From NCBI RefSeq assembly GCF_026571515.1, contig NW_026860787.1, forward strand, positions 1 through 64,000: a stretch of DNA of 64,000 nucleotides. Direction: 5' to 3'. The first letter of the stretch is position 1. Each line of letters starts with the position of its first letter. Shown here one piece after another: positions 3,001-62,916 of the stretch. A program made the position numbers and the translations under genes. Below the pieces are notes generated by a model, which ran no database searches, was not told the DNA's origin, and saw only the letters and a program-made list of their open reading frames with translations. This stretch comes from Ruditapes philippinarum. Its lineage: Eukaryota.

Positions 3001-4091
3001 AAGTTAGCCTGAGAATTTTGCCAACATTGTTACCAGCTACAATATGGTCATATCATTTGCTCAAGCTGATAGATATTATATATACAAATTCCATTTTTTC
3101 CAATGATGAAAACAAACCACCTTATACAGTCACTATACAGAGATAAAAGGAATGCTTTATTATTCTTTTTATAAGCAGCCCCCTTTACCATACCATGGCA
3201 ACAAGTATAGTTGTCAGGTAGTTCCCCTGATATGTATCTGTACAACTGAAGATATGTTATTTTACATATTGCAGATACTTTTATATAAGTCAGTATTCAC
3301 TTTAGATGATCAAAATGAGGAAGACACCTATTTTAATGTGCTATGAGATATATCTTAAGTTCCCATCTATTTAGCTTAGCTGGACATAATAACATGGATT
3401 AAATGGGCTCTGATATGGCAGCAGTTTTATTTCTGTAATTTGGTAAAACAGTGAATTTTCACTAGAATTGTGAATCCCATGCTGAAAATTGTGAAGGACT
3501 GTTGATTATAAATGGGCTTGTTCTTCATTTCCACTTACAATGTATATAAGGATTTTTCTAGTCTCAAAATTGTGAAGGACCATTGTTGATTGTGAATGGA
3601 CCTGTTATTTGGTATCAGTTACCATGATGTAAAAAAAATCACTAATTTTAACATTTTTCATAATCAAAGAACTTAGATGCTTTATATAAACAGTTATAAG
3701 AAACTTTGTTTAAATAAATAAAGTAGAACATATTTATAATTGCTTAATTAGATTATATATCATTGTATTTCATTAGTTTAAATGATATATACACCTGTAT
3801 ATTGATTATTTCACATTTAGACACTCTGACTATTGTAGTAGAAATTTCTTCTTGTAAAGGTGGTCAACCTGATCAGATCAACTTTTAAATGTCTCCAGAC
3901 TTAAGTAACTTTTATGTTTTAAATCTCAGGTGTTGAATGAAACTGCTATTTTGATAATTAATTTTTTTAAAAATTGCATCATCAAAATGAATTTGTAATT
4001 TCCTCCTACATATTACCTCCTTGCACAATCAAGATAAATAACAAACATTTAAAGGGAGACACAGGCAAAATTTTCATTTCTTAGTTTTGAT

Positions 4092-4143
4092 TTTTTAGCT
4101 CGACTATACGAAGTATATGGAGAGCTGTCCTACTCGCCCCGGC

Positions 4144-4174
<31 letters not shown>

Positions 4175-56262: not shown

Positions 56263-57475
56263 AACACGTTATTTTCAATAATTTCGATAATAATTCGCGG
56301 ACTCTGGTCAGTCTACACGAATTACCGAATTACACAAATACAGGAACCAAAAAACGAACCCGGAAATGAAAATACTCCCGACCTGTAATGCACTTCTGAT
56401 TATTAAATTATTTACTTATTTTTTATTAAGTTAAATTTAGTCACAAAATGTTTATAAAGGTAAGAAACATGACAAAAATTCACGATATATTTTGGAAGAG
56501 GAAATTAAAATTAAAGATATAAAATGTGTGCATCAATAATTTGGTTCCTGACTTTACATTTAAGATCTTGGCGTTTAATGAAACGAGAACCAATCTGTAA
56601 AGGTCAAACTCGTGAACAATCGCAACTTTTCGGCCCTTTCCGTAAGTCCAATATACAGTTGAGCAATCGCAACTACTCGGCCCTTTCCGAGGTGGGGGGA
56701 AAATCCCGGGATCCGGGACGCCCGGGATCCGGGATCGTATTAGATATATAGGGAAAACTCATAAACTATATTTGTGTTTATTTTTGTCGTAATGAGAGGC
56801 GATTAAATGTTAACTATTTATTTCTTTAATTGTATGTAATGAACAGTAAATGAATTTTACTTAAGATTTAAATATATTTCGAGTTATTTATTAACACACT
56901 TAAAATGCGGAAATCACATTACTTGTATAATTACAGTATAGTATACTTGGAAATATCAAAGTTTTTGTTAATACAATATTTGGCTTAATTTTATGTTCAT
57001 GTATTTAAATATTATTTTTAGAAAAGATCAGAAGATATACTTAACATAATTGATAACAAAAAAAAACTTTTGACGTGTATGACAGGTGGTCAATTCCCGG
57101 GATCTCTGTACTGTTTAATAGATCCCGGCTTTTCTGAAAGCAAATTGGTAATGGTCAATTTCCCGGGATATATATATCTTATATACGATCCCGGCTTTTC
57201 TTAATTGGCATGCTTATTTTACCTAAAATGCGTGTAAAATACTATATAAAAATGCAGATAATCGATATATAATTTATCGTCGACACCGAGAACTGGTGGT
57301 CAATTCCCGGGATTACTATATGTTTAATACGATCCCGGATCCCGGCTTTTCTGTAGGCGATCCCGGGATTTTCCCCCCACCCCTTTCGGACAGTCTTCGG
57401 ATAAGGACTTATTAGATAATAGCCGAGGAAGTTCCGAATGATTTTATGCACAACTGGGTTCACCACAACAACAAA
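56263..57475. promoter_or_regulatory. Probable bidirectional promoter between ARPC1 (candidate non-coding exon 1 ending at 56263, - strand) and CNPY
   Basis: Minus-strand GTAAG donor at 56258-56262; the ARPC1 ATG exon has an acceptor 16 nt upstream so a 5'UTR exon is required; CpG-richer sequence, ccggaaat site at ~56360, duplicated caatcgcaact..tcggccctttccg motif at ~56617 and ~56664. Confidence 0.55.
56691..57381. mobile_element. 691-bp Mutator/MULE-type MITE
   Basis: TIR ggtggggggaaaatcccgggatc / gatcccgggattttccccccacc; 9-bp TSD cctttccga (56682) / cctttcgga (57382). Confidence 0.85.
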
Positions 57476-60400
57476 ATGAGGACGAAATCTCTTGTAATTT
57501 TAACTTGTTTATTGAGTTTTGTTGTTTATTGCTGTGCAGAAGAAGAAGATAAAGGACCCGTTATACCACCATCGAAATGCGAAGGTATGACAATTTTTTT
57601 TATTTTTTATTTTCTTGAAAATATGACAAATTATCTTCCTGTTTCAATTTTTCTACTTTCAGTTTAGGTTAGTTTCAACGTTTCAAGTGTGTATTTAATT
57701 AACTAAGTTAAAATATGTTATTACACAATTTCTACCTTATATAAGTGTTGGAATGACATTATTTTCTTATTTGAAACAGGGCCGATATTGGATAATTTGA
57801 ATTAAACATGTGTCAATTATCTAGGGGATTTTTCAATTTTCTATGTGGAATTTTCTGATTGGCTGAAAGCTTATCTATGCTAAACGCCTTTCATATACGA
57901 CGTTGATTGCTTTATACAATGTAACATTATAATGAACGTGCCAGTAGTAACTATTATATCTGATGAATCAGAATATTTAGTTTTAGTGCGGTCAAATAAC
58001 TTATAACAGTTAAATTATATATATATGTCAATGGTCATGTTGAATTATTATGACATGAAGTATTAAGATGTTAGATAACATTTATTTATAAATTGATAAA
58101 TAATCAATATAAATTTTCAAAATTTTCTTGAAAATTAACATGAATTACAGGCAATTGCACATTTTTGAACAAACGAAGGAAATTACATAATCTGTATCAT
58201 TAGAGAAAATATACATTCTGTACCCTGGCACTCAAAATAAGAGATGTATAGCGCAACAGCAAAAAATAATTATGATAAGGATTAAATAAAATGCTAATAC
58301 TAAAAAAAATTTCATTATCAATAAGTTATATTTAATTAATTAACTGCTGATTTACTGGAGGAAATTTTGTTGTTTGCGTTTTTAAATTTTTTATATCCTT
58401 GATATGTTTCTTTTTTTATGAAAAGCTAATAGGTTTAATAACAAAACCTTTTTGACCTGTACCTTATTATCACAGGTCACAAGTTTTTGTTTGAAAACTA
58501 TAGTTACTTAAAGTAAGGCCATCTTTAAAAAAATGTTTGTTTGCAGTAACCCTACCCAGAATTTTTAAGGTGGGTAGGTAGGTCGATTTTTTTTTTTTAT
58601 TGAACTGTACTCCCAAGTAAACATGGAATTTCAAAATGCTGGACAATATATGCTTTGATAATCTGGTAACAATTAATAAATTGATAACTGAATTCTAAAT
58701 TTAATAAGACCTACATTTTATTTCTTCTATTAACCTTTAAAAGAACGAAAACAAAGCACAAGGCATAATTTTCTGATTCAAAAAAAATAATTTTTTATTC
58801 AGACCATGAAAAAAATTTTTGAGTAGGGGCAAATTTTGTGAGTCGGTCGCGTTACTGTAAACAAACATTTTTTTAAGGATGGCCTAATCAAAGTGTTTCA
58901 ATTACTGAACTTTTCAGATTTCTTTATATTTTTTTTTAGCTTGTCTATTTAGAGGTTTAAGTTGAATTTATGATCACACATGTAAATATTGAAATTTAGG
59001 ATAGTAACAGACATGAAAATTTGCCAATACACATGTACCTTAAATATACACCACATATTCATTCATATATATTTGTTTTAGTTTGCAAGTATCTAGCTAC
59101 AGAGCTTAAGGACAGACTTGAAGAAACCGGGAAGACAAAAGAAGTTCTCGAAATTGGACATGGACTTGATTCTAAAAAGAAAAAGAAAATTAAATACAAC
59201 ACAGCGTAAGGATTTAATTTGATAGAAGAGAGTCATGAAATAATATTGTATTATATTTTTTATTTGCTGTAATATATTGTTATTATATTCTAAAAGTGTA
59301 TGTAAAATATGTACTTAAAATTTAATAAAAATTATATGGTAGTAATAAACTGTAGATTCTTAACTTAGAAAAAATGCAATCATTATGAGGGAAATTATGA
59401 TATATTCATTATTCACATTGATACATACTAAGTACTGTGAAAAATTGCTAAGGGAAAAATAATTTAAACATATACATGCACATCCAATTCTTTTGTTTGA
59501 GCTATAGAAAAGCCTACAAAAATATTACAATTTCCAAAGGGATAAACATGGATTATTTGTTGTATTTCAGAGAATTAAGATTGATTGAGGCATTACAAGA
59601 TCCTCATATATGTGATAAAATTCTTCAGTACAATGTCCACAAAGAAAGGGAAGGCAGTTTGAGGTTTGCCAAGGGACAGAGTGAAACTTTCCAAACATTG
59701 CATAATCTTGTGTAAGTAAAAGTGTGTACTAAGAATATTTCTGTAAAAATGTTAGATTTTAAGCACACACATCCAAAATATGTTAATAGATAGAAGGACA
59801 TGCATTATTTTATCAAATATGTAAACAATTAAGAAAAAGGAAATGCTCATGTAAAGCACATGTATTAGTAAGTATTAGTAAGTAGTCAAGTGAATACATC
59901 ATGTTTAACAACTTATCTTGAATGATGAGTTAATGTTTGAGAGATAGAGTTGTTTTAAACATTATGTATAAAGTTGAGGGTTCAAAACATCAGTGAATGA
60001 ACTGTTATAACTTCACCAGGTTTAAAATGACAGTGTTATAATGTTCCCACACAGTCATTACTCAGTGAACTTATAGAAATAAACAAAGTGGTAACTGTGT
60101 TTAAACTTACCTCATTTGTTGGTTTCAATGAAAATAATAAAAGCAGAGAACTTGAAAGTCTATTATACTGCTCAATCTATTAAGTATTTAATGAAAGTTC
60201 TCTATCTACAATGTACTAGTTCTTTTTGTTTATAGTAATAAAGGGGTTGATGTTCAAATGGACATCCCATACGAACTTTGGAACTCTACTCCAGCAGAAG
60301 TTACACAAATGCATAAAGAAGTAAATTTCAGTTGTTAAGTGTTTATTGTGTACCAGTAGAGGTCACTCATTTATCAAAAAGCAGATGTTTATCTTTGGGC

Positions 60401-62916
60401 ATTTGGTCTATTATCATCACCAATTTTTGACTGTTTTGAAGATTGAGTGATACTCACTGTAACTGTTGTGTTTATATATGTTACATTTCAAATATCTCTT
60501 TAAATGTTACCTCTACTGACTTTGTATAGTAACATGATTTTATCTCACCTGAGCACATGGTGCTTAAGGATGAGTTATTAGGATCAGTCACTTGTCAGTC
60601 ACTAGACTATGTCAGAATGTCTTAATCCTTATCTGTGCAGTTTGACCAGGCTCTATACGGTTGGTAGTTACCTATACTGTTGGTAGCTGACCTTGTATTT
60701 TGATATTGAAAAAGCTTAAACATAACATAGACTTTTCCAAATTCTAATTAGGGCAAATTTATTTCACATATTTAGCAAGATAAGGATAAATGATATCCTA
60801 GACAAGTTTTAAACTGTGACATTTAACCAAATACAAGGTCACCATTTCAAATCAAAGAAAAGTTGTAACAACAAACAAAATTAGGTTTCTGATCAAGCCA
60901 TAATAGTGTCTATCTAAATGATTTCTAGTATAAGTTTGAATATGGATTATCTGCAGTGAAAAAAAGCAATGTCATCAGCTCAGATAACAAGAAAACATTG
61001 TAAATACTTATGGTTAGAGTTTTGATTGGACCTTCATCAAATACATCTGTCATTTTGGGGAAGACAGGGTCTTTCAAATAGACAGGCCCTGGTTAAAGAA
61101 CTGGGTCACCAGATGAAATCAACCAAAACCTTGTAACAATTTAAGGTACATTTTTGTACCACTAAATCAGGTAAAATATGAGATGTTTACAGTCTAAAAC
61201 TTGGTTGATGGTATGGAATGAAAAAAGATGAAAGTTTTTAGCTCCACTATTCAAAGAATAGGGAGAGCTATTGTACTCACACAGGCGTCACCATCATAAT
61301 TTTGTTGAGTTCAAGTTGATATCTCCAAAAACACTGCAGGGTATCAGTTGAAACTTTACACACTTATTTAAGAGCATAATAGGCGGTCACTCTCCAAGGC
61401 CCATAACTCTAACATGTATTTTGGCAGAATTATGGCTCTTTTTTGAATGAAGGCAGTTATTCTCCTCTCAGGTGAGCAATGAAAGGACCAGCATAGCCCT
61501 CTTATTTTAATTTTCATTGCATGCTTAATTTTTTTTTCTCTCATTCTTATATCTATTGTCATTATTAGTTTTCACTACATGCACATTATATTAAAAGTAT
61601 TTAAGGACTAATTTATTTCTTCAGCACAACTCATGGTTTTGCATCTGTTACTTTTATTTTCCACAGGTGAACATCGCGTGGCCATGACTTATACTATACC
61701 CCCGTTCCCCCTCTACAACCTTATTTTCCACAGGTGAACGTCGTGTGGCCATGACTTATACTATACCCCCTGTTCCTCCTCTACAACCCAAAACCCTTAA
61801 ACATCATCCAAACATCAGAAGTATTGACAAAAATAAATTTTATGGGAAAAAAAAATTATTTTTGTCAATACTTATGATGTTTGGATGATGTTTAAGGGTT
61901 TTTGGTTGTAGAGGGTGAACGGGGTATAGTGTAAGTCATGGCTACGCGACCTTCACCTGTGTTATTTTCCACATTAGAAAACAAATGATTTAATATATGA
62001 AAGTTTGATTTTTCATTTGAGATCTGGTGAAGAAATTGAAATGGAAGAAATAACTGAAGTAAAAAACTAGTAATTGCAAAAAGGATAAAAAACTTCTAAT
62101 AATTTCAAAATTTAAATAATAATTTAAACAAATTTTTTAAAATTTTTTTCTTTAAATAAGTATGTGAAATATTCTTTTTCTAATGAAGGTACTGTAAAAC
62201 ACATGCTTTCTCAAAGCTCTCATTGTTAGACGGTCAGTTCAGATTATTTTTTTTGTCAATCTTTTGATATTGTGTCTATGTTGTAGTGTACTTGATTGTT
62301 TATAGTAACAAAGGAGTGAAAGTTGTGATGGATGTTCCATATGAACTTTGGAATGCAACATCTGCTGAGGTGGCTCAATTACAGAGAGAAGTAAATGCAG
62401 TATTTTATCTCACCCTCCACACATCCTATATCACTGCTTTGTTTAAGATGACTGGTCATTTTTGCTCATATATGGGGAGGTTTTAATTTTCTTCTCTATG
62501 TCATATCCAAGCATATACCAATATGTCAAAACTAAGGGGAAGGATTGTTTTCATGCCAGTTCCTTTAGTCCAACAGACATAACTTCAACTGACAGTGGTT
62601 TATATGAACTTACATCACTATCAAGCTAAAATAAGTATGTTTAAAATCAAGGCAGTGAAGTCAAGGTTGAACACAGGGGTTGTATACCTAGTACTTACCT
62701 TATTTAGAAGACACATTTATTAATACCCAACTATTTGGTGATGCTGTTTATACCATTAGAACATTAAAACCTCTCCATGTCTATATTATGTTGTACCTGT
62801 GTGTATGTGTTTTGTAAATTCTATATTTAAGGGATAAAGGGGTGAAGGTTGATCTAGGTATTCCCTATGAATTATGGGATACTCCGTCTGCTGAAGTGAC
62901 ACAGCTACAAAGAGAA
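57476..62916 (+). CDS. CNPY3: Protein canopy homolog 3/4 (saposin-like ER co-chaperone), 5' part; 3' exons beyond the window
   Basis: Exons 57476-57584 (signal peptide..PSKCE), 59082-59205 ([18 protein letters not shown]), 59571-59711 ([33 protein letters not shown]), then one of three exon-4 copies. Co-orthologous to CNPY3 and CNPY4. Confidence 0.92.
60236..60320 (+). CDS. CNPY3: Canopy alternative exon 4a ([28 protein letters not shown])
   Basis: tttgtttatag| 85 nt |gtaaat, phase 2-0, open frame. Confidence 0.85.
61729..61961. mobile_element. 233-bp palindromic hAT-type MITE (8-bp TSD ttattttc) with a partial tandem copy of its left end at 61654-61720
   Basis: cacaggtgaa...ttcacctgtg, ~110-bp near-perfect arms, TSD at 61721-61728 and 61962-61969. 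Confidence 0.8.
62306..62390 (+). CDS. CNPY3: Canopy alternative exon 4b ([28 protein letters not shown])
   Basis: gattgtttatag| 85 nt |gtaaat, phase 2-0, open frame. Confidence 0.88.
62832..62916 (+). CDS. CNPY4: Canopy alternative exon 4c ([28 protein letters not shown])
   Basis: ctatatttaag| 85 nt |gtaagg, phase 2-0, open frame. Confidence 0.88.

Follow-up and report, generated by a model that had tools for sequence, protein, structure and literature searches.

The Manila clam Ruditapes philippinarum has a single CNPY3/4-type canopy gene, and between exons 3 and 5 of this gene we find three homologous exons (4a, 4b and 4c), exactly one of which would have to be spliced in. Each of them specifies its own version of the same loop, and the version in exon 4b is very close to that of vertebrate CNPY3. 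Taking all observations together, we lean toward a view in which a single gene with a one-of-three exon cluster provides differing loops and in which the likeness between the clam and CNPY3 most likely arose by parallel evolution.

The gene is located on contig C9274, and the window, i.e. the whole stretch of DNA that was analysed, comprises 64,000 nucleotides (Table 1). Its product is named 'protein canopy 4-like' in RefSeq (P0173). Each exon was searched singly; P0173, which is identical to the 4c form, stood for the spliced product, and joined exons were used only for frame checks, while exon 3 served as the query in the search of representative sequences. With a cut-off of 21.1 bits, the PF11938 profile matched at 59081-59203 (32.2 bits), 59572-59766 (25.6 bits) and 64950-65093 (37.9 bits), and exon 4c taken alone scored 15.3 bits over profile positions 86-111. 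The N-terminus of P0173 is hydrophobic and was judged by inspection to be a signal peptide; the protein ends in HTEL, a KDEL-like ER retrieval motif. The N-terminal CxxC and the conserved cysteine pattern of the canopy family are present as well: in a 28-sequence alignment C40, C94, C156, C184 and C196 never vary and C37 hardly does, and P0173 has them. In other words, the gene encodes an ER-luminal saposin-like (DUF3456) protein.

Table 1. Positions of the exons and of an intronic repeat of the clam canopy gene in the window (a slash marks the exon end)
Feature	Positions	Strand	Evidence or remarks
Coding part of exon 1 (with start codon, signal peptide and the first CxxC cysteine)	57446..57584	+	tblastn of P0173, 100% over residues 1-46; donor g/gtatga
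Exon 2, constitutive, 124 nt	59082..59205	+	PF11938 positions 4-47, 32.2 bits; splice sites; identity to P0173
Exon 3, constitutive, 141 nt, final 'gt' = start of split Val codon	59571..59711	+	Profile, splice sites, P0173 match
Exon 4a, 85 nt, CNPY3-related variant (Q-M-D, N-S-T-P), Pro after sequon	60236..60320	+	Within 3-like clade; 4b-like flanks
MITE-like inverted repeat, transposon insertion in 4a-4b intron, non-coding	61654..61961	.	83-nt arms, 88% complementary, plus tandem 50-nt direct repeat
Exon 4b, 85 nt, full CNPY3-type signature (V-V-M-D, N-A-T-S, E-V-A), N-glycosylation sequon	62306..62390	+	Splice sites, identity counts
Exon 4c, 85 nt, common bilaterian type (V-D-L-G, D-T-P-S, E-V-T), without sequon	62832..62916	+	Copy in RefSeq model P0173

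The cluster shows the structural properties by which mutually exclusive tandem exons are recognized, namely equal length, equal phase, homologous sequence, canonical splice sites and a reading frame that is retained upon single inclusion. In all three copies the sites are AG/GT, one 5' base completes the Val codon begun in exon 3 and the 3' end is in phase 0. As 85 is not divisible by three, a transcript with no copy or with more than one runs into a stop at once: in the frame check, inclusion of 0, 2 or 3 copies resulted in a stop codon within a few codons of the junction, and a single copy kept the frame. Transcripts with zero or multiple copies would presumably be removed by nonsense-mediated decay. 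The copies share 55-68% protein identity, and a six-frame search of the 1.4-Gb assembly with 4b returned exactly three matches (E 1.7e-11, 4e-6, 3.7e-5), which are these three copies. Synonymous differences among them are saturated (pS 0.70-0.91) compared to a pN of 0.17-0.24. Exon 4b is flanked by the acceptor ttgtttatag and the donor gtaaat, the flanks of 4a are the same as those of 4b, and 4c has tatatttaag and gtaagg. The preliminary description had pointed to this splice context shared by 4a and 4b, and we confirm it; its suggestion that 4a is a later duplicate of 4b does not hold, because synonymous sites between the two are saturated (pS 0.91 at a pN of 0.17) and 4a is thus not a recent copy. 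We also considered inverted repeats in the introns as elements of docking/selector RNA pairing and dropped them; the repeats are AT-rich or transposon-derived. RNA reads at 95-99% likeness pile up on repeats like the MITE-like element of Table 1.

Exon 4b has all six signature states of vertebrate CNPY3, the N-x-T sequon included, and has 20 of the 22 residues that form the CNPY3 core. Its identity to vertebrate CNPY3 averages 20.4/28; to its neighbour 4c it is 19/28, to other invertebrate exons 12-16/28 and to the 3-like exons of Mercenaria and Dreissena 24-25/28. In the exon tree, 4b and 4a belong to a single clade with all CNPY3 exons (87/87), and every 3-like exon keeps N-x-T, with x varying (A, E or H). 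The CNPY3 likeness of 4b proposed in the preliminary description is upheld by the signature, the identity counts and the clade, as well as by the '3-like' naming of the counterparts in Mercenaria and Dreissena. The motifs reported there (N-A-T-S in 4b, D-T-P-S without a sequon in 4c, N-S-T-P in 4a) were found again with matching coordinates and translations, and the human motifs that it cited proved sound: the CNPY3 string occurs unchanged in database CNPY3 proteins of birds and mammals, and the CNPY4 string occurs in P0108. Contigs L066 and L067, which have the mammalian CNPY3 string and are possibly human, were left out of the comparisons together with human proteins.

For exon 4c a similar kinship with CNPY4 had been claimed. 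Its identity to CNPY4 is 19.2/28, to arthropods and gastropods 20.6/28 and to Lingula 22/28, and in the exon tree it falls with lophotrochozoan exons, not with CNPY4. The tree and the identity counts argue against 4c as specifically CNPY4-like, its state being that of nearly all bilaterians; the 4-like state, [ED]LG with D-x-P, occurs in about 220 of the 270 classified sequences. By these counts 4c is of the common bilaterian type, equally near to CNPY4 and to insects, snails and Lingula. The exon is identical in Mya and Mactra, and Dreissena X2 differs by one residue (27/28). The last five exon residues track lineage, not type: in both exon types they are Q/H-R in lophotrochozoans and K-K-Q in vertebrates. 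Of the two groupings foretold for an exon-4 tree, that of 4b with CNPY3 was thus recovered and that of 4c with CNPY4 was not. In the separate tree of the constitutive part, the clam gene is found with other imparidentian bivalves (100/98) and CNPY3 with arthropods (96/92), and the AU test leaves CNPY3 and CNPY4 as one group unrejected (p 0.21). In this tree the constitutive part of the clam gene lacks the grouping with CNPY3 alone, apart from CNPY4 and other invertebrate genes, that a CNPY3 orthologue would show. A PDB sequence search with 4b gave no match, a scan of genome contigs revealed no relative, and when the Mercenaria 3-like segment was used in a region-limited protein search, the matches listed were filled by vertebrate CNPY3 clusters, with no further invertebrate carrier among them.

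CNPY3 is a client-specific co-chaperone for GRP94 in the folding of Toll-like receptors, and to our knowledge the difference between CNPY3 and CNPY4 is poorly understood. The alternative exon is predicted to encode the long loop that connects two helices, together with the opening turns of the second of them, approximately residues 138-165 of human CNPY3. In the AF2 model of Mercenaria P0188 the loop spans residues 129-146 and the helix 147-162, with pLDDT of 80-93 for the block; the helix limits of human CNPY3 are E128-K139 and A157-E172 (PMC13694807). The stretch contains Met145, the mutation of which in mouse CNPY3 (M145K) abolishes gp96/GRP94 binding (PMC2982182), and Asn153 of the only sequon in the stretch. 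The assignment of M145 rests on human and bat numbering, the two internal Met residues of the domain being at 126 and 145 in Myotis P0444, the only full-length mammalian orthologue whose N-terminus is standard. A glycosite of CNPY3 has been quantified (PMC9869281), and glycosidase treatment changes the mobility of CNPY3 (PMC13694807). The 4c isoform would have the ancestral, unglycosylated loop, the 4b isoform would have V-M-D in place of D-L-G plus an N-x-T sequon, and the 4a isoform would have a third loop with Pro after the sequon. An N-x-T sequon followed by Pro is usually poorly glycosylated. Given these differences between the loops, the isoforms most likely differ in glycosylation and in the engagement of GRP94 or its clients.

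Alternative forms of the same gene are annotated in two other bivalves. The 3-like isoform is X2 in Mercenaria (P0188) and X1 in Dreissena (P0184), the 4c-type isoform is X1 (P0167) and X2 (P0333), respectively, and RefSeq calls them 'canopy 3-like' and 'canopy 4-like'; within each species the proteins are identical outside the alternative segment. The 3-like/4-like pair is common to Ruditapes, Mercenaria and Dreissena and is therefore old within imparidentian bivalves. Elsewhere, exons 3 and 5 enclose a single exon 4 in many annelid-like (clitellate-like) contigs and in the tunicate-like contigs L076 and L077, and the imparidentian-like contig L039 also has one exon 4. Oyster and mussel protein clusters, derived from hundreds of RNA contigs, contain one exon type only. 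In fish CNPY3-like, fish CNPY4-like and tunicate-like contigs there is one longer exon: its start lies 13 codons farther upstream, and no intron interrupts it at the position of the cassette 5' end. Within their clusters, amphioxus proteins are 4-like in 7/7 cases and Ciona proteins in 3/3, and no second copy was detected among the arthropod proteins and contigs examined. The exon pair that the preliminary description would have placed in such outgroups was not encountered: in the proteins and contigs seen from amphioxus, arthropods and tunicates, there is one type or one exon. For most phyla, absence of a second copy refers to annotated proteins, and alternative exons lying in tandem are frequently overlooked by gene prediction. 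One further tandem pair came to light, in the annelid-like contig L068, where the order is opposite to that in the clam and V-V-M-D is present without the sequon, i.e. as half of the signature. Parts of the signature turn up repeatedly in other lineages (E-V-D in L073; K-L-D, V-L-D and D-S-T-S..A elsewhere), and 3-like or near-3-like exons outside bivalves are found in the annelid Dimorphilus (P0256) and in P0195, which stands beside a nemertean in the constitutive tree.

How, then, did a clam exon come to resemble CNPY3? Most likely, the likeness reflects parallel evolution of a loop switching between two preferred states. We consider the origin to be parallel because the 4-like state is near-universal, because the chordate exon is devoid of the upstream intron of the cassette, and because exon 4 is single elsewhere. 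The one exon type of oyster and mussel, the lineage-specific tails, the recurrence of partial signatures and the opposite order of the copies in L068 argue in the same direction. Nonetheless, the exon tree favours a single origin of the 3-like exons, which would count against parallel origin, and convergence would demand rather many identical changes of state: six in clams and vertebrates, five in Dimorphilus and four in P0195.

Descent from an ancestral exon pair whose members vertebrates distributed over CNPY3 and CNPY4 is less likely and ranks below parallel evolution. A mutually exclusive 3-like/4-like pair might have been present in the bilaterian or at least the pre-vertebrate gene, with CNPY3 keeping the 3-like exon, CNPY4 the 4-like exon and clams holding both; we regard this as rather doubtful. 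We have similar reservations about the fuller version, in which the one gene of the bilaterian ancestor would have made a glycosylated CNPY3-type, GRP94-binding isoform and a CNPY4-type isoform, vertebrates would have turned these into two genes, and venerid and dreissenid clams would keep both. Such a history is consistent with the agreement of 4b with CNPY3 in the core and at all six signature positions, with the single clade of all 3-like exons, with 3-like or near-3-like exons in three spiralian groups (imparidentian bivalves, Dimorphilus and, on the nemertean side, P0195) and with the CNPY3 type being already present in lamprey (P0257, P0258). It also needs fewer changes if signature positions alone are counted, and separation of splice isoforms is a documented process (PMC4494069). 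However, since the chordate exon lacks an intron at the cassette 5' end, an ancestral pair requires that the same intron was lost three times, in the fish CNPY3-like, fish CNPY4-like and tunicate-like genes. The single exon 4 of the tunicate-like contig, the uniformly 4-like amphioxus proteins, the arthropod proteins and contigs seen, all with no second copy, the tails that track lineage in both exon types, the reverse order in L068 and the position of 4c outside the CNPY4 group speak against it too. The AU test rejects neither history: it leaves standing the vertebrate exons as one clan (p 0.18) and, at a cost of 16.6 log-likelihood units, the imparidentian exons as one clan (p-AU 0.097). The proposal of the preliminary description that the CNPY3/CNPY4 split predates the gene duplication thus faces four obstacles, namely the chordate exon, the single exons 4, the lineage tails and L068.

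The pair might instead have arisen once, early in Spiralia (molluscs, annelids, nemerteans), and been lost many times, the vertebrate CNPY3 loop being independent and later than the duplication. The 3-like states of bivalves, Dimorphilus and the nemertean-like P0195, all with lophotrochozoan-type tails, would fit this scenario, as would the tandem pair in L068, and chordate exon structure opposes inheritance on the vertebrate side only. Yet the copy order differs between L068 and the clam, the second copy in L068 is missing the sequon half of the signature, the clitellate-like contigs and L039 contain just one exon, and the proteins of oyster and mussel are of one type, so that we think it unlikely and place it next in order.

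The remaining question is whether all three copies are used. Over the exon region, four RNA runs gave a depth of 0-3 with no junction reads and left 4b almost uncovered, the reads being mostly transposon-like and only 4-12% of each run having been read. RefSeq annotates the 4c form alone for R. philippinarum; the 4a-type exon is absent from database proteins, and no orthologue or transcript of 4a was seen. These observations would agree with 4a, 4b or both being unused relic exons in a gene that makes only the annotated 4c protein, but this is very improbable, as all three copies keep an open frame, canonical splice sites and exact length, pN is low despite saturated synonymous divergence, 4b is 86-89% identical to exons used by RefSeq isoforms in two other clam families, and the RNA evidence comes from that small part of each run.

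The clam gene narrows the difference between the CNPY3 and CNPY4 types to 28 residues, which lie in a loop with the residue required for gp96 binding and a likely glycosylation site. Such a natural loop swap in an otherwise identical protein offers a clean test of the CNPY3-type loop. If the likeness is parallel, as we prefer, six identical changes were reached independently, pointing to two discrete functional loop states; if the pair is ancestral, it represents a deep case of isoforms becoming paralogues.

Compared to known systems, the clam protein resembles vertebrate CNPY3 (PRAT4A; gp96/GRP94 co-chaperone for Toll-like receptors) in its PF11938 domain and ER-luminal layout and, in the 4b loop, in the shared core positions, the M145-equivalent Met and the N-x-T sequon. 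It differs from CNPY3 in that the rest of the protein groups with lophotrochozoan genes, the exon boundaries are different and the exon tail is of the lophotrochozoan type. With vertebrate CNPY4 (PRAT4B), 4c shares V-[DE]-L-G, D-x-P-S and E-V-T, states that almost every bilaterian canopy 3/4 gene has. Mercenaria mercenaria (P0167/P0188) and Dreissena polymorpha (P0333/P0184) have the same gene with direct counterparts of 4b and 4c; they are annotated with two forms and, as known from proteins, no 4a-type, whereas only 4c is annotated in R. philippinarum. For canopy genes, our literature search turned up no account of alternative exons. Tandem duplicated mutually exclusive exons and the separation of splice isoforms after duplication have been described (PMC4494069, PMC9741552, PMC4417111). 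In documented isoform separation the pair is present in outgroups of the duplication, whereas here the tunicate-like contigs and the amphioxus and Ciona proteins have one type and chordate exon boundaries differ. As in the documented tandem-exon systems, the clam copies are homologous, of equal length and equal phase and subject to a one-copy frame rule, and one variant resembles one vertebrate paralogue.

The window spans bases 1-64000 of Manila clam contig C9274. When the R. philippinarum RefSeq protein annotated as canopy 4-like (P0173, 249 aa, 4c form) is aligned to the locus, exons 1 and 3 are 100% identical and the other exons near-identical; several exons also exceed the Pfam cut-off for the canopy family (PF11938, DUF3456). 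Exon 4 is present in three homologous copies (4a, 4b and 4c), each of 85 nt with AG directly 5' and GT directly 3'. A Val codon opened in exon 3 is closed by the first base of any copy, and all three end in phase 0. Direct reading of exons and splice sites thus confirmed the coordinates, phases and translations of the preliminary description. A six-frame query with 4b against the whole 1.4 Gb assembly containing contig C9274 found only these three places. Splicing in zero, two or three copies introduces stop codons within a few codons of the junction, and therefore protein is possible from single inclusion only. Pairwise comparison of the copies gives saturation at synonymous sites (pS 0.70-0.91) but little non-synonymous change (pN 0.17-0.24), and therefore purifying selection has long preserved 4a, 4b and 4c alike. 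Copy 4a had been proposed to be a later duplicate of 4b. The two do have a common splice-site context, but the saturated synonymous divergence rules out recent copying.

Exons of the clam canopy gene and the tandem exon 4 copies of an annelid-like contig
Feature	Position	Strand	Basis
Exon 1, coding part	57446-57584	+	P0173 alignment
Exon 2	59082-59205	+	
Exon 3	59571-59711	+	
Exon 4a	60236-60320	+	
Exon 4b	62306-62390	+	
Exon 4c	62832-62916	+	
Exon 5	contig 64974-65091, past window end	+	
Two further exons	about 66.3 kb and 67.5 kb of contig, past window end	+	
L068 exon 4 copies	3492-3575 and 4064-4144		

The genome has other DUF3456 sequences. A second gene lies at C5129:220440-222235 (L002, L003, L005), its middle exon covering profile positions 42-112 unbroken, and an isolated exon-5-like fragment containing an in-frame TGA at C6101:24882-25019 (L007). 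In a relative, the P0003 gene model (240 aa) joins exon 3 directly to a frameshifted exon 5, as if the predictor had skipped every exon 4 copy.

Four RNA runs bearing the same species label were aligned from exon 3 to exon 5, with 4-12% of each run read. Within this fraction, depth was about 0.5-3 on exon 3, 4a, 4c and exon 5 and about 0 on 4b, and no splice joint between exons 3 and 5 reached the reporting threshold. Most aligned reads were transposon-like, and repeats in the cluster introns attract RNA reads of 95-99% likeness. The 4a-4b intron contains a MITE-like element (61654-61961) with 83-nt arms, 88% complementary, and a tandem 50-nt repeat. Between 4b and 4c, a 44-nt stretch (62607-62650) is 84% complementary to contig positions 64044-64087 in the 4c-exon 5 intron; this could be a pairing that controls splicing or the remnant of a repeat. 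A minisatellite of eight or so units of about 34 nt immediately precedes exon 5, just past the window end (contig 64706-64958; L008:8706-8958). Its units resemble the exon 5 acceptor region and first codons, one translated unit matching the first ten residues of exon 5 at 70%.

To address the relationship of the copies to vertebrate CNPY3 and CNPY4, we gathered relatives by an exhaustive search with exon 3, because single exons are too short for word-based search to find full-length relatives, and then by word searches with full-length matches. CNPY3-named vertebrate proteins, from lamprey to birds and mammals, carry a common 18-residue string, and CNPY4 proteins follow V-[DE]-L-G-[ILM]-P-x-E-[LM]-W-D-E-P-S-x-E-V-[TS]. 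The motifs previously given for the two human proteins are thus borne out, one CNPY4 representative (P0108) reproducing the string given for human CNPY4 exactly. The 3-like (V-V-M-D, N-x-T-S, E-V-A) and 4-like (V-D-L-G, D-x-P-S, E-V-T) types differ at six positions, each reachable by a single-base change. At all six, 4b has the CNPY3 state and 4c the CNPY4 state. For 4b the proposed CNPY3 likeness holds: its identity is 20.4/28 to vertebrate CNPY3, 19/28 to 4c and 12-16/28 to 4-like exons outside imparidentian bivalves. For 4c a specific likeness to CNPY4 does not. About 220 of the roughly 270 classified sequences have [ED]-L-G and D-x-P; carriers of the CNPY4 state include insects, chelicerates, gastropods, oysters, scallops, chiton, Lingula, a nemertean, annelids, amphioxus and Ciona. 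Copy 4c averages 19.2/28 identity with CNPY4, against 20.6/28 with arthropods and gastropods and 22/28 with Lingula. It is of the ancestral type, and the 3-like state alone calls for explanation.

The 3-like exon is not confined to this clam. In Mercenaria, 'canopy homolog 3-like isoform X2' (P0188) has it and 'canopy 4-like isoform X1' (P0167) is its sister; in Dreissena the corresponding proteins are 'canopy homolog 3-like isoform X1' (P0184) and 'canopy 4-like isoform X2' (P0333). The two proteins of each pair differ in the exon 4 segment only, and therefore the 3-like/4-like pair is conserved over Venerida and Myida. Exons close to the 3-like type are also found in the annelid Dimorphilus (P0256; V-V-Y-D, N-E-T-S) and in P0195, a protein derived from a transcript (D-M-D, N-E-T-S), which adjoins a nemertean in the constitutive-exon tree. 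Every 3-like exon retains N-x-T, with differing x. A Pro right after the sequon Ser/Thr, the arrangement in 4a, reduces glycosylation. Mercenaria mercenaria also has a second canopy 3/4 gene (P0262), on the same chromosome as P0167/P0188 and with only a 3-like exon annotated; this may mirror, on a small scale, the fixation of a single isoform in one paralogue.

In the exon 4 tree (28 columns, 73 rows), the clam copies do not cluster to the exclusion of vertebrate sequences. Copies 4a and 4b fall into one clade (87/87, not starred) with the 3-like exons of Mercenaria and Dreissena, P0195, Dimorphilus and every CNPY3 exon, as expected for 4b, but 4c lies among imparidentian 4-like exons and CNPY4 among arthropod and tunicate exons. 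The tree loses 16.6 log-likelihood units when all imparidentian copies are constrained to group (p-AU 0.097) and 12.2 when the CNPY3 and CNPY4 exons of vertebrates are (p-AU 0.18), so that the AU test rejects neither history. The constitutive-exon tree (133 columns, 59 rows) places the clam gene with other imparidentians (100/98), CNPY4 with amphioxus (93/95) and CNPY3 with arthropods (96/92). The paralogues are not sisters in this tree, although the AU test does not reject their usual sister relation (p 0.21).

It is tempting to speculate, as was done earlier, that an ancestral exon pair persisted until the vertebrate duplication and was then divided between CNPY3 and CNPY4. The full signature match of 4b and the single clade of 3-like exons agree with this. 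However, exon structure is harder to reconcile with it. Scanning metagenome contigs with a 28-protein alignment gave 80 loci, host DNA in many cases; the possibly human L066 and L067 were excluded. The 85-nt cassette with clam phases recurs in insect-like, annelid-like and bivalve-like contigs. In fish CNPY3-like (L036), fish CNPY4-like (L078) and tunicate-like (L076, L077) loci the intron at its 5' border is absent, and one longer exon begins 13 codons upstream, immediately following A-K, and shares the cassette's 3' end. An ancestral pair would thus require separate intron losses in CNPY3, CNPY4 and tunicates. It would also have to accommodate the single 4-like exon between exons 3 and 5 in tunicate-like contigs, many clitellate-like contigs and one imparidentian-like contig (L039), and the one exon 4 type in each of the oyster and mussel protein clusters, drawn from hundreds of RNA contigs. 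The sole other tandem pair found, in annelid-like L068, has its 4-like copy first, opposite to the clam order, and its second copy combines V-V-M-D with D-E-P-S. Partial 3-like states recur across lineages, namely E-V-D (L073), K-L-D and V-L-D forms, and D-S-T-S..A in Mytilus. Finally, exon tails track lineage whatever the type (Q-L-Q-R-E in both clam exons, K-K-Q in both vertebrate paralogues). Because of this structure, distribution and tail evidence taken jointly, we favour a loop that would have switched repeatedly between two preferred states, the ancestral pair being less favoured. Exon duplication has occurred more than once in the canopy gene. Exon 2 is tandemly duplicated in two annelid-like metagenome contigs (L068:920-1033 and 1822-1941; L046:2525-2647 and 3096-3221), and such tandem events seem to recur.

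AlphaFold2 modelling of the 3-like isoform of Mercenaria places the exon as a long loop (129-146) and the start of the next helix (147-162); block pLDDT is 80-93. Human CNPY3 helices span E128-K139 and A157-E172 (PMC13694807), and therefore the exon corresponds to about human residues 138-165; in these coordinates M145 is the signature Met and N153 the Asn of the sequon. In mouse CNPY3, M145K causes loss of function and of gp96 binding (PMC2982182). That the signature Met matches mouse M145 is suggested by human numbering and by one mammalian orthologue with a standard N-terminus, whose only internal domain Mets are 126 and 145. Human CNPY3 carries a quantified glycosite (PMC9869281), and glycosidase shifts its mobility (PMC13694807). 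If the clam exons behave similarly, the clam would produce three versions of one co-chaperone, splicing selecting among them. We infer that the 4a, 4b and 4c isoforms would differ in glycosylation and in how the GRP94-contacting loop binds, and that the computed frame rule, presumably with nonsense-mediated decay of misframed mRNA, would hold mRNA to one copy.

Our literature search found no paper on canopy genes with alternative exons, or on a tie between such exons and the CNPY3/CNPY4 difference. The isoform pairs themselves are already known from RefSeq annotation of two clams, Mercenaria and Dreissena, and both tandem mutually exclusive exons and isoforms turned paralogues are established ideas (PMC4494069, PMC9741552, PMC4417111).
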